Shown in pieces: positions 34,701 to 37,700 of a stretch of DNA of 64,000 nucleotides. The DNA comes from Octopus sinensis (lineage: Eukaryota). The stretch spans positions 70,742,001-70,806,000 of the forward strand of contig NC_043003.1 in NCBI RefSeq assembly GCF_006345805.1, in the 5' to 3' direction. How positions within the stretch are numbered: position 1 is the first letter of the stretch; each line of letters begins with the position of its first letter. Position numbers and translations under genes: made by a program. The notes below the pieces were generated by a model. The model searched no databases, was not told the DNA's origin, and worked only from the letters and a program-made list of their open reading frames with translations.

Positions 34701-37700
34701 TAGTTCAGCTCTGATCAGCTGCTGAACCTCAACAAAACACAAATGTTACTCACATGAGCACTGCTCACATATCTCAAGTGCTACTACTGTTAATATACAC
34801 ACACACACACACTGTCAAATATCATAGACCACATCTACATCAAAGACAGCTGGATGATTTCAAAACATTTGCTCACCAGCTTGCTATGGTTATTATCCAC
34901 TGATACTAAGGTGGGGGTGTGGCTGTGTGGTTAAGAAGCTTGCTTCCAAACCATGTGGTCTTAGGTTCAGTCCCACTGTGTGGAACCTTAGGCAAGTGTC
35001 TTCTACTAAAGCCTCGTGAGTGGATTTGAAAGACAACACTGTGTCTAGATGTCATGTTATGATTGTAAATGAAGACATGCCTGTCACACAAGTGGAGCTG
35101 TTCATTTGCCGTCTTCTGTGAAAAACATGTCAAGCATGGGGATAATATTACCCTGCTTGGAAATATTTGGGTGTCTGGCCATAGAAAATCTGTCTTATCA
35201 AATTTCCATCTGATCAATGAGTTAATTTCAGTGGTGAACAGATTGCCCTATTTTATCACAATACTGTTGCTCATCCAGCCATTCGTATTAATTAGTTCAA
35301 TTAGATAATATAACATACTAATTATTTTTAAAATACCTATCATGTGACCACATGGTCTTCAGAACAAGGGTTATTTTTTTCTTTTCTTTTTAGCACAGTT
35401 TTTATGTTGACACAATTTGTTGGCTGGGATTGTTGTTGCTTGAATGAAGGAAGGCCATCATTACATGTGGTGGTGGCGGTGGCAGTGGTAGTGGCAGCGG
35501 TCATTCCTATTTCAAATTGGGATATTGACGAGGCATGGAAATTCTAAACTAATGAATGTGGCTGGGTAGTTAAGCAGCTTGCGACCAGCATTTGGGTTAA
35601 CACCACCATTAGGGTTAATTCTTCTCTGTTCTTTCACTATTAGGGTTAGCATTTCTCTGCTCTTTCACTGTTAGGGTTAAGATTAGGGTTAATTCTCCTC
35701 TGCTCAGTCACCGTTAGGGTTAATTCTTCCCTGCTCTTTCACTATTAGGGTTAACATTAGGGTTTAGTTTTCTCAGCTCTTTCACTGTTAGGGTTAAGAT
35801 TAGGGTTAATTCTCCTCTGCTCAGTCACCGTTAGGGTTAATTCTTCCCTGCTCTTTCACTATTAGGGTTAACATTAGGGTTTAGTTTTCTCTGCTCTTTC
35901 ACTGTTAGGGTTAAGATTAGGGTTAATTCTCCTCTGCTCAGTCACCGTTAGGGTTAATTCTTCCCTGCTCTTTCACTATTAGGGTTTAGTTTTCTCAGCT
36001 CTTTCACTGTTAAGGTTAAGATTAGGGTTAATTCTCCTCTGCTCAGTCACCATTAGGGTTAATTCTTCCCTGCTCTTTCACTATTAGGGTTTAGTTTTCT
36101 CAGCTCTTTCACTGTTAGGGTTAAGATTAGGGTTAATTCTCCTCTGCTCAGTCACCATTAGGGTTAATTCTTCCCTGCTCTTTCACTATTAGGGTTTAGT
36201 TTTCTCAGCTCTTTCACTGTTAGGGTTAAGATTAGGGTTAATTCTCCTCTGCTCAGTCACCATTAGGGTTAATTCTTCCCTGCTCTTTCACTATTAGGGT
36301 TTAGTTTTCTCAGCTCTTTCACTGTTAGGGTTAAGATTAGGGTTAATTCTCCTCTGCTCAGTCACCATTAGGGTTAATTCTTCCCTGCTCTTTCACTATT
36401 AGGGTTTAGTTTTCTCAGCTCTTTCACTGTTAGGGTTAAGATTAGGGTTAATTCTCCTCTGCTCAGTCACCATTAGGGTTAATTCTTCCCTGCTCTTTCA
36501 CTATTAGGGTTTAGTTTTCTCAGCTCTTTCACTGTTAAGGTTAAGATTAGGGTTAATTCTCCTCTGCTCAGTCACCATTAGGGTTAATTCTTCCCTGCTT
36601 TTCACTATTAGGGTTAGTTTTTTAGTTTTCTCAGCTCTTTCACTGTTAGGGTTAAGATTAGGGTTAATTCTCCTCTGCTCAGTCACCATTAGGGTTAATT
36701 CTTCCCTGCTCTTTCACTATTAGGGTTTAGTTTTCTCAGCTCTTTCACTGTTAGGGTTAAGATTAGGGTTAATTCTCCTCTGCTCAGTCACCGTTAGGGT
36801 TAATTCTTCCCTGCTCTTTCACTATTAGGGTTAACATTAGGGTTTAGTTTTCTCAGCTCTTTCACTGTTAGGGTTAAGATTAGGGTTAATTCTCCTCTGC
36901 TCAGTCACCGTTAGGGTTAATTCTTCCCTGCTCTTTCACTATTAGGGTTAACATTAGGGTTTAGTTTTCTCTGCTCTTTCACTGTTAGGGTTAAGATTAG
37001 GGTTAATTCTCCTCTGCTCAGTCACCATTAGGGTTAATTCTTCCCTGCTCTTTCACTATTAGGGTTTAGTTTTCTCAGCTCTTTCACTGTTAAGGTTAAG
37101 ATTAGGGTTAATTCTCCTCTGCTCAGTCACCATTAGGGTTAATTCTTCCCTGCTCTTTCACTATTAGGGTTTAGTTTTCTCAGCTCTTTCACTGTTAGGG
37201 TTAAGATTAGGGTTAATTCTCCTCTGCTCAGTCACCATTAGGGTTAATTCTTCCCTGCTCTTTCACTATTAGGGTTTAGTTTTCTCAGCTCTTTCACTGT
37301 TATGGTTAAGATTAGGGTTAATTCTCCTCTGCTCAGTCACCATTAGGGTTAATTCTTCGCTGCTCTTTCACTATTAGGGTTAACATTAGGGTTTAGTTTT
37401 CTCAGCTCTTTCACTGTTAGGGTTAAGATTAGGGTTAATTCTCCTCTGCTCTGTCACCATTATCATTCAGTGATATGAACAAATACAATCTACAAATCAT
37501 GGTAGCAGACATTTTGATGAGTTTGCAGAACTGAAGGGTTACTTTGCAATATTTTATTTCATTTACTTTTTACTTATTTCAGTTATTGGTTTGTGGCCAT
37601 GCTGGAGCACTGCCTTGAAGGGTTTTAGCCAAACAGATTGATCCCAGTATGAATTTTTAAGTCTAGTACTTGTTCTATCATCCTCTCTTGCCAAAGCACT

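Follow-up and report, generated by a model that had tools for sequence, protein, structure and literature searches.

The stretch of Octopus sinensis DNA analyzed here (64,000 nucleotides of contig NC_043003.1, hereafter the window) carries the gene for RagA, a regulator of mTORC1, and a tandem array of telomere-like TTAGGG words lies within the first intron of that gene. Over the 45.6 kb available for comparison, the window is identical to chromosome CM016865.1 of GCA_006345805.1, an assembly given as O. sinensis in PMC13652810. A tblastn search with the human RagA sequence located seven coding exons (exons 2 to 8) on the + strand from position 44489 onward; exon 2 (44489..44588, +) is placed by the tblastn match together with the sequence, which has an acceptor AG at 44487-44488. 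Exon 1 is the sole upstream candidate that fits the pattern ATG...K-K followed by GT, and its coding part, ATGAAAAAGAAG (MKKK; 28443..28454, +), has the donor GTAAGT directly 3'. Spliced together, the eight exons encode a 308-residue protein that matches the annotated RagA of Octopus vulgaris and of Octopus bimaculoides with 100% identity and 100% coverage, and the gene range called in the public record corresponds to 28443-58852 of the window. Because this exon model matches the annotated RagA, intron 1 spans 28455-44488 and the array sits inside it on the sense strand, as an initial annotation, made from the letters of the window, had claimed. Isoform X2 of O. bimaculoides RagA (301 amino acids) lacks the first seven residues, implying that exon 2 can also be joined to another first exon, a non-coding one, which could matter for any effect on splicing. 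About 250 bp upstream of the start codon, a TCACGTG word (E-box/CLEAR-like, 28183-28189) and a CCAAT box (28203-28207) are consistent with a promoter there; regulation of the MiT/TFE type would be speculation.

The array occupies 35591-37462 on the + strand and consists of head-to-tail 31-bp monomers of three subtypes together with 12-bp half-units. Tandem Repeats Finder, one of the checks that the initial annotation had proposed, confirms it at 35604-37462 (period 105, 17.1 copies, 94% matches, score 2882) and also calls sub-periods of 31 and 74 over the same stretch. Cutting the sequence ahead of each TTAGGG-like word resolves an A monomer (TTAGGGTTAATTCTCCTCTGCTCAGTCACC ending in A or G, that is, TTAGGGTTA + ATTCTCCTCTGCTCAGTCACC + A/G), a B monomer (TTAGGGTTAATTCTTCCCTGCTCTTTCACTA, or TTAGGGTTA + ATTCTTCCCTGCTCTTTCACTA) and a C monomer (TTAGGGTTTAGTTTTCTCAGCTCTTTCACTG, or TTAGGGTTT + AGTTTTCTCAGCTCTTTCACTG). 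A constant 12-bp unit, TTAGGGTTAAGA, stands between C and A, and an optional one, TTAGGGTTAACA, between B and C, where it lengthens the 105-bp trimer to 117 bp. The parsing thus returns the same anatomy of monomers, insert and trimers that had been read from the sequence initially.

From its 5' end, the array begins with a degenerate 18-bp edge unit, TTTGGGTTAACACCACCA (35591..35608, +), at the junction with the remnant of a short interspersed nuclear element (SINE) head; the unit is present in O. vulgaris too, and Tandem Repeats Finder reports an 18-bp period over it (35584-35618). A "proto-trimer" follows (35609..35682, +), which unit parsing divides into two diverged 31-bp monomers, one B-like and one C-like, and one TTAGGGTTAAGA; O. 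vulgaris has nearly the same units there, with no difference in the first edge monomer and a single one (CACTG vs CACTC) in the second. The core (35683..37428, +) holds 16 trimers of the form A + B + [optional 12 bp] + C + 12 bp, each 105, 111 or 117 bp long, and a terminal A-type monomer (TTAGGGTTAATTCTCCTCTGCTCTGTCACCA) plus TTA (37429..37462, +) closes the array before unique 3' flank. Successive B-to-B spacings are 117, 117, 105, 105, 105, 105, 105, 105, 111, 105, 117, 117, 105, 105 and 105 bp; after a 9-bp phase offset, they agree with the B-monomer starts and the 117,117,105 series reported before. The TTAAGG variants begin at 36010, 36535 and 37090; two of these had been noticed one base off (as 36011 and 37091), while 36535 had been missed. 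Also missing from the earlier reading are a TTATGG word (37300) and two monomers of altered length: the one at 36578 has lost 1 bp, and the one at 36608 has an insertion of 7 bp. Core trimers share a mean pairwise identity of 98.7%, whereas the A, B and C monomers differ from one another at 5-10 of 22 spacer positions. The multi-monomer copies are therefore far more alike than the monomers inside them, and the array is a higher-order repeat (HOR).

Counting gives 69 TTAGGG in the array, all on the + strand, with no CCCTAA, in line with the earlier estimate of about 70 on the sense strand; from base composition, ~0.4 would be expected over the same length. Every TTAGGG in the array is part of TTAGGGTT, and 54 of them belong to the 9-mer TTAGGGTTA, while the remaining 62 kb of the window contains seven TTAGGG and no TTAGGGTTA. 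Hexamers recur at spacings of 12 or 31 bp, equivalent to 1.5 per 31-bp monomer, on a + strand with a composition of 42% T and 18% G. Two of the seven TTAGGG outside the array fall in a separate tandem repeat ~1.4 kb upstream of RagA exon 1, in which a 146-bp unit occurs twice (26760-27050, 88% matches).

In an ungapped comparison of the array with itself, an offset of 1080 bp ranks first (91.8% identity), against 74% at an offset of 105 bp. The two blocks concerned (35659..36301 and 36739..37381, both +) are ~640 bp long and differ by three mismatches. The first carries the 117,117,105 order, a TCTCTG variant and a TTAAGG variant, and the diagnostic variants (G in column 31, the 12-bp insert, T in column 93 and TTAAGG) occur in the same order in both. 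The 1080-bp offset of the initial annotation is thus real and is the best self-match, yet its status as a third level of organization was overstated: with only ~1.7 copies, it represents a single block duplication rather than an established third-order repeat. This duplication is recent.

Several other identities for the array were tried and rejected. A canonical interstitial telomeric sequence (ITS), or the relic of a telomere fusion, would contain contiguous hexamers, and neither the TTAGGGTTAGGG dimer nor its complement occurs in the arrays of O. sinensis, O. vulgaris or O. bimaculoides. The array is consequently not a canonical interstitial telomere tract, which agrees with the earlier view of it as a spaced, hierarchical array on the RagA sense strand, a description that the parsing and the gene model both bear out. 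A G-quadruplex-forming element was rejected since no pattern of four G3 tracts is present with loops of up to 20 nt. Hidden coding capacity was likewise rejected, all reading frames of the array being closed; the sole open reading frame (ORF) of at least 60 amino acids (61 amino acids, minus strand) exists only because of the local insertion of 7 bp. When the window was scanned against Rfam, neither the array nor its surroundings matched an RNA family. The one match, a tRNA at 10724-10795 (+, 56 bits, full length), is intergenic upstream of RagA and may be a real gene or the tRNA-derived head of a SINE.

To place the array in a comparative frame, we used orthologous RagA loci. A RagA protein look-up returned the same gene with its introns from four assemblies, to which the cuttlefish Acanthosepion pharaonis was added (L006); species names of the compared assemblies follow PMC13652810. 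Intron 1 of O. sinensis is collinear with that of O. vulgaris (95.6-98.6% identity) and with that of O. bimaculoides (~84-91% identity). Over the 106 bp that directly follow the array on its 3' side, O. sinensis shares 100% identity with O. vulgaris and 91.5% with O. bimaculoides, and the flanks of the O. vulgaris array as a whole are 98-100% identical to those of O. sinensis. Collinearity and the matching 3' flank together establish that the arrays of the three species are orthologous. The RagA loci of Argonauta hians and Acanthosepion pharaonis contain no array and no match to the trimer, although their RagA proteins are identical or 96% identical. The proposal to look for orthologous presence therefore yielded arrays in O. 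vulgaris and O. bimaculoides and none in Argonauta or the cuttlefish.

The orthologous arrays differ markedly in size and composition. In O. vulgaris (L002 16956-17313), the same edge units enclose two trimers, both of the 117-bp form with a TTCG variant in B; Tandem Repeats Finder reports a period of 117 and 2.7 copies. The last O. sinensis trimer (37312), which combines the TTCG variant with the AACA insert, is of this O. vulgaris type, while the other 15 have TTCC in common and form a sinensis-specific family. The O. bimaculoides array (L003 18500-19404) has individually diverged monomers in its 5' part and a gap of 233 N (18982-19214) inside it. Its 3' part repeats a 45-bp unit that was amplified locally, TTGGGGTTAACA + TTAGGGTGTTAATTTTTCTCTGTTCTTTYCCTA, which begins TTGGGGTTAACA + TTAGGGTGTTAA... 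and does not contain an exact TTAGGGTTA; this unit is present in 5.2 and 4.0 copies on the two sides of the gap (L003 18750-18981 and 19215-19390), at least nine in all. Different sub-units have thus been amplified in different lineages. Published divergence times are ~34 million years (My) for O. bimaculoides vs O. vulgaris/O. sinensis and ~2.5 My for O. sinensis vs O. vulgaris (10.1101/2023.05.16.540928). With these dates, the orthology of the arrays makes the locus at least ~34 My old, and the copy counts (16 vs ~2 trimers) amount to an ~8-fold change within ~2.5 My. Copy number and variant order therefore change quickly at one orthologous locus between conserved flanks, which is the behavior of a minisatellite.

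Next, we asked whether the 9-mer is conserved beyond the sequence around it, since the initial annotation had described an array that keeps this word while its spacers diverge. In O. sinensis, which has six distinct types of 31-bp monomer, the majority fraction across these types averages 0.98 in the TTAGGGTTA block and 0.86 elsewhere, and the block ranks first among the 31 cyclic 9-bp blocks. To that limited extent the description stands, although the spacers of these types are themselves 86% conserved. It does not carry over to the ten distinct monomers of O. bimaculoides, in which the values are 0.878 for the motif and 0.827 for the rest and the motif block shares the top rank in a three-way tie with pure-spacer blocks such as TTCTTCTCT. 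Decayed forms of the motif in that species include TTAGGA, TTAGAG, TTTGGG, TTAAGG, TTGGGG and TTAGTG. Exact sites of the form YTAGGGTTR number 54 in O. sinensis, 11 in O. vulgaris and five in O. bimaculoides, none of the latter in its amplified unit.

Recent variation among the O. sinensis trimers points the same way. Four variable columns, representing four events, fall in 69 bp of spacer, and one variable column, representing at least three events (G to A and G to T), falls in 36 bp of motif; in O. vulgaris, one further change (TTAGAG) affects the motif and two affect the spacer. Although these counts are small, the motif appears to have been hit by recent mutation in O. sinensis at least as often as the spacer. 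At the RagA locus, then, the 9-mer does not seem clearly more conserved than the spacers, again on small numbers, and this is the outcome that the initial annotation had itself named as telling against its functional proposal. Nor do the TRF half-sites appear to be maintained across orthologues: motif and spacer are equivalent in O. bimaculoides, and the array is absent from Argonauta and the cuttlefish.

Based on the anatomy and the comparison of loci, the array is probably a locus-bound, fast-evolving, neutral intronic minisatellite with higher-order structure and not a functional telomere-like element. We propose that a 31-bp unit beginning with TTAGGGTTA was tandemly duplicated in RagA intron 1 after the split of Octopus from Argonauta and before that of O. 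bimaculoides from O. vulgaris/O. sinensis (~34 My). The word itself may have come from a short, decayed telomere-like seed or may have arisen by chance; in a genome of a few gigabases, a given 9-mer should occur by the thousands. The monomers would then have diverged into subtypes, and the 12-bp units would have arisen as partial-monomer duplications; TTAGGGTTAAGA and TTAGGGTTAACA are both similar to the monomer start, TTAGGGTTAATT. Unequal exchange between sister chromatids or homologues, together with replication slippage, would subsequently have amplified multi-monomer blocks that differ by lineage, the 105/117-bp trimer in O. sinensis and the 45-bp unit in O. bimaculoides. On this scheme, the direction of change is a gain, with O. 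sinensis having acquired ~14 trimers within ~2.5 My, including the block duplication at the 1080-bp offset. The 69 TTAGGG would represent one word multiplied by hitch-hiking because the 31-bp unit was amplified, and their uniform strand would follow because amplification was head to tail. We infer this mechanism from the likeness of the HOR copies, the diverged edges around a homogeneous core, the lineage-specific units and the 1080-bp-offset duplication; HOR copies that are more alike than the monomers within them are the classic signature of unequal exchange.

Several points weigh against neutrality or narrow the basis on which it is read. The array has been kept at its site for ~34 My or more rather than being lost. 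When monomers of O. sinensis and O. bimaculoides are pooled, TTAGGGTTA still ranks first (0.903 vs 0.841), and its first rank among the O. sinensis subtypes may leave room for weak constraint or biased conversion. The 54 perfect TRF half-sites, together with the TRF2-like TRF of molluscs, make incidental binding in vivo plausible, possibly with effects. Moreover, neutrality is judged from three assemblies of one individual each, the O. bimaculoides array is split by an assembly gap, and the locus-bound status refers to ~290 kb of cephalopod DNA rather than to whole genomes.

The closest described phenomenon appears, by analogy, to be the telomere-motif mosaic satellites and interstitial telomeric repeat (ITR) domains of plants, exemplified by the centromeric-telomeric mosaic satellites of Arabidopsis, which combine a telomere-motif mosaic with higher-order structure (bioRxiv 10.64898/2026.05.10.723265), and by the Solanum ITRs (He et al. 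2013, as cited in PMC5615363). Like these, the octopus array joins a telomere-like word to unrelated sequence within the monomer, has seemingly been amplified in situ into higher-order units, and changes size abruptly from lineage to lineage independently of true telomeres. The plant arrays are megabase-sized and (peri)centromeric, with many degenerate telomere repeats per monomer, whereas the octopus array is 0.4-1.9 kb long, euchromatic, intronic and in an animal. Whether taken as the 31-bp monomer or as the 105-bp HOR, its unit falls, like its overall size, within the range of classical hypervariable minisatellites, which have 10-100 bp units, reach kilobase scale, are often intronic and are defined by length polymorphism within a species. 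Rapid change of copy number and variant maps among close relatives, diverged edges around a homogenized core and internal block duplication are further shared features; the G-rich recombinogenic core of human minisatellites is, however, not evident in an array of 42% T and 18% G.

Two telomere-related systems offer partial parallels. As in the ITS bound by TRF1/TRF2 in vertebrates, the array is internal and has exact YTAGGGTTR half-sites that a TRF could in principle recognize; unlike the contiguous (TTAGGG)n of an ITS, it has no contiguous hexamers in three Octopus species, and its motif decays in the orthologue. The repeats of telomeric repeat-containing RNA (TERRA) form G-quadruplexes. A sense transcript of the array would contain UUAGGG words as TERRA does, whereas TERRA starts in the subtelomere and has contiguous UUAGGG (PMC5615363), and the octopus words are 12 or 31 nt apart, in an intron that is spliced out, and lack the G-quadruplex pattern.

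Repetitive DNA surrounds the array. The first ~45 bp of a SINE, a head remnant, adjoin its 5' edge (35551..35598, +). The fragment left in O. sinensis does not by itself reach the length needed to match other copies; in the O. bimaculoides orthologue, the sequence runs on as an intact SINE that matches many dispersed copies. In that region (L003 16857-18330), ~1.6 kb separates the SINE head from the array, an interval that includes an AT microsatellite, an assembly gap and other SINE pieces. The abutment in O. sinensis and O. vulgaris is therefore a deletion junction, possibly formed at TTTGG(G)TT microhomology. On the 3' side, a dispersed SINE copy lies ~90 bp downstream and outside the array (37552..37790), with 47 matches in both orientations in the window and loci. 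One SINE family, to which this copy belongs, is dense in the window and in all Octopus loci, likewise in both orientations (e.g., 34169-34592, 56010-56232 and 9597-9818), and much of RagA intron 1 is made of its copies. Farther into the gene, the intron between the exons at 49898-50120 and 53690-53785 contains a GC-rich 63-bp tandem repeat (51520-51734, 3.4 copies, 74% matches) followed by a (TA)n run.

Upstream of RagA, ORFs of non-LTR (non-long-terminal-repeat) retrotransposon type occupy the region of 12647-15524 (-), with an RVT_1 match at 7e-31 and a weak, sub-threshold endonuclease/exonuclease/phosphatase match. Beside them, at 15816-16940 (-), a 374-residue ORF contains a long stretch of poly-Q and matches a Myb/SANT-like domain weakly, below threshold. 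Gag/pol remnants of LTR-retrotransposon type lie at 21822-25187 (+), with RVT_1, RT_RNaseH and an integrase core in separate ORFs; a 248-residue ORF at 21822-22568 has no Pfam match and is gag-like by eye, with a Cys/His zinc-knuckle-like stretch near the C-terminus.

This setting bears on the possibility that a dispersed satellite family, borne or seeded by a transposable element (TE), has one of its copies here, with properties set by the element and not by the locus. Satellites associated with Helitrons and MITEs (miniature inverted-repeat transposable elements) exist in other molluscs. The intron is dense in SINEs, one of which stands at the 5' edge and another 90 bp downstream, and a SINE origin of the monomer was suspected on account of the edge-bound head. 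It was rejected, as the trimer, compared with the window and loci by blastn at word size 7, showed no significant similarity to SINE copies, and the abutment itself is secondary, given the ~1.6 kb between SINE and array in O. bimaculoides. No TE termini, terminal repeats or TE coding capacity were seen next to the array. Other copies of the trimer were absent from ~290 kb of cephalopod DNA beyond the orthologous site, a sample so tiny relative to the genome that their absence is weak evidence; within the ~190 kb made up of the window and the loci of O. vulgaris, O. bimaculoides and Argonauta, the immediate flanks matched at the orthologous sites alone. A scan of JGI metagenomes with TTAGGGTTAATTCTYCYCTGCTC returned one non-repetitive 23-bp match (L005 1491-1513, -, contig Ga0081606_1035022), which we judge to be a chance identity in an unrelated eukaryote-like contig and not a repeat. 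The literature, searched for an octopus satellite of the TTAGGG type, yielded no relevant description. Taken together, a TE-borne origin is unlikely.

The length and 1080-bp structure of the O. sinensis array could also be an artefact of assembly, the true array being short, as in O. vulgaris, or of some other length. O. vulgaris has only 2.7 copies although the flanks are 98-100% identical, and a near-perfect 640-bp duplication, a 1-bp deletion (36578) and a 7-bp insertion (36608) are of a kind that a mis-joined or poorly polished long-read consensus can produce. Against this, the array is seen in three independent assemblies, and its 1.86 kb is short relative to long reads. The O. sinensis array also has private variants (TTCC vs TTCG in B, and the 105-bp form) that are absent from O. 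vulgaris and so could not be produced by collapse or expansion of a vulgaris-like array. We accordingly give an artefact a low probability.

A selected function, as the initial annotation had suggested, fares slightly worse. The array would then be docking DNA for an octopus TRF (shelterin), or would give the RagA pre-mRNA a TERRA-like segment that binds hnRNP A1, and would modulate transcription, replication or splicing of intron 1. UAGGG(A/U) is the classical hnRNP A1 motif. The predicted sense transcript would carry it 69 times (69 TAGGGT on the + strand, in intron 1), alongside 54 exact YTAGGGTTR. TRF1 dimers require two such half-sites, with spacing and orientation free (PMC3241663), so that the array offers what double-stranded TRF binding needs in sequence. 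Molluscs have one TRF2-like TRF with a conserved Myb recognition motif, although binding by invertebrate shelterin remains to be determined (PMC8653790), and TTAGGG is the experimentally determined telomere repeat of octopods (PMC13218726). In addition, the motif exceeds all other blocks in conservation when the O. sinensis monomer subtypes are compared, and the array has been at its site for ~34 My. These points are outweighed by the behavior of the array between species. Copy number differs ~8-fold between species 2.5 My apart (~2 vs 16 trimers); the unit amplified in O. bimaculoides has no exact site, five exact sites are left in that array and the motif is conserved there no better than the spacer; Argonauta and the cuttlefish lack the array despite an identical or 96%-identical RagA; and recent mutations are not depleted in the motif. 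Without contiguous UUAGGG or G-quadruplex potential, the putative transcript is also unlike TERRA. A selected function is thus not supported, and we regard it as very unlikely. A species-specific variant, in which the O. sinensis expansion (54 vs 11 half-sites) may form a domain that is bound by TRF, difficult to replicate or active in modifying chromatin, and/or a sponge for hnRNP A1 in the pre-mRNA, and so measurably alter RagA expression or intron-1 processing between the sibling species, seems the least probable of all.

If TRF or hnRNP A1 did bind and RagA responded in a copy-number-dependent manner, the locus would be of interest for telomere-protein or mTORC1 biology, and a species-specific TRF platform would allow shelterin binding away from telomeres to be studied in an invertebrate across a natural series of copy numbers. 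The main value of the probable neutral minisatellite lies elsewhere, in that it clears a false lead: some seventy strand-uniform telomere words would follow from amplifying one 31-bp unit. For the octopuses themselves, differences in array length could be used as a polymorphic marker to tell O. sinensis from O. vulgaris, and the three-species comparison provides a clean, dated example of minisatellite turnover in cephalopods.

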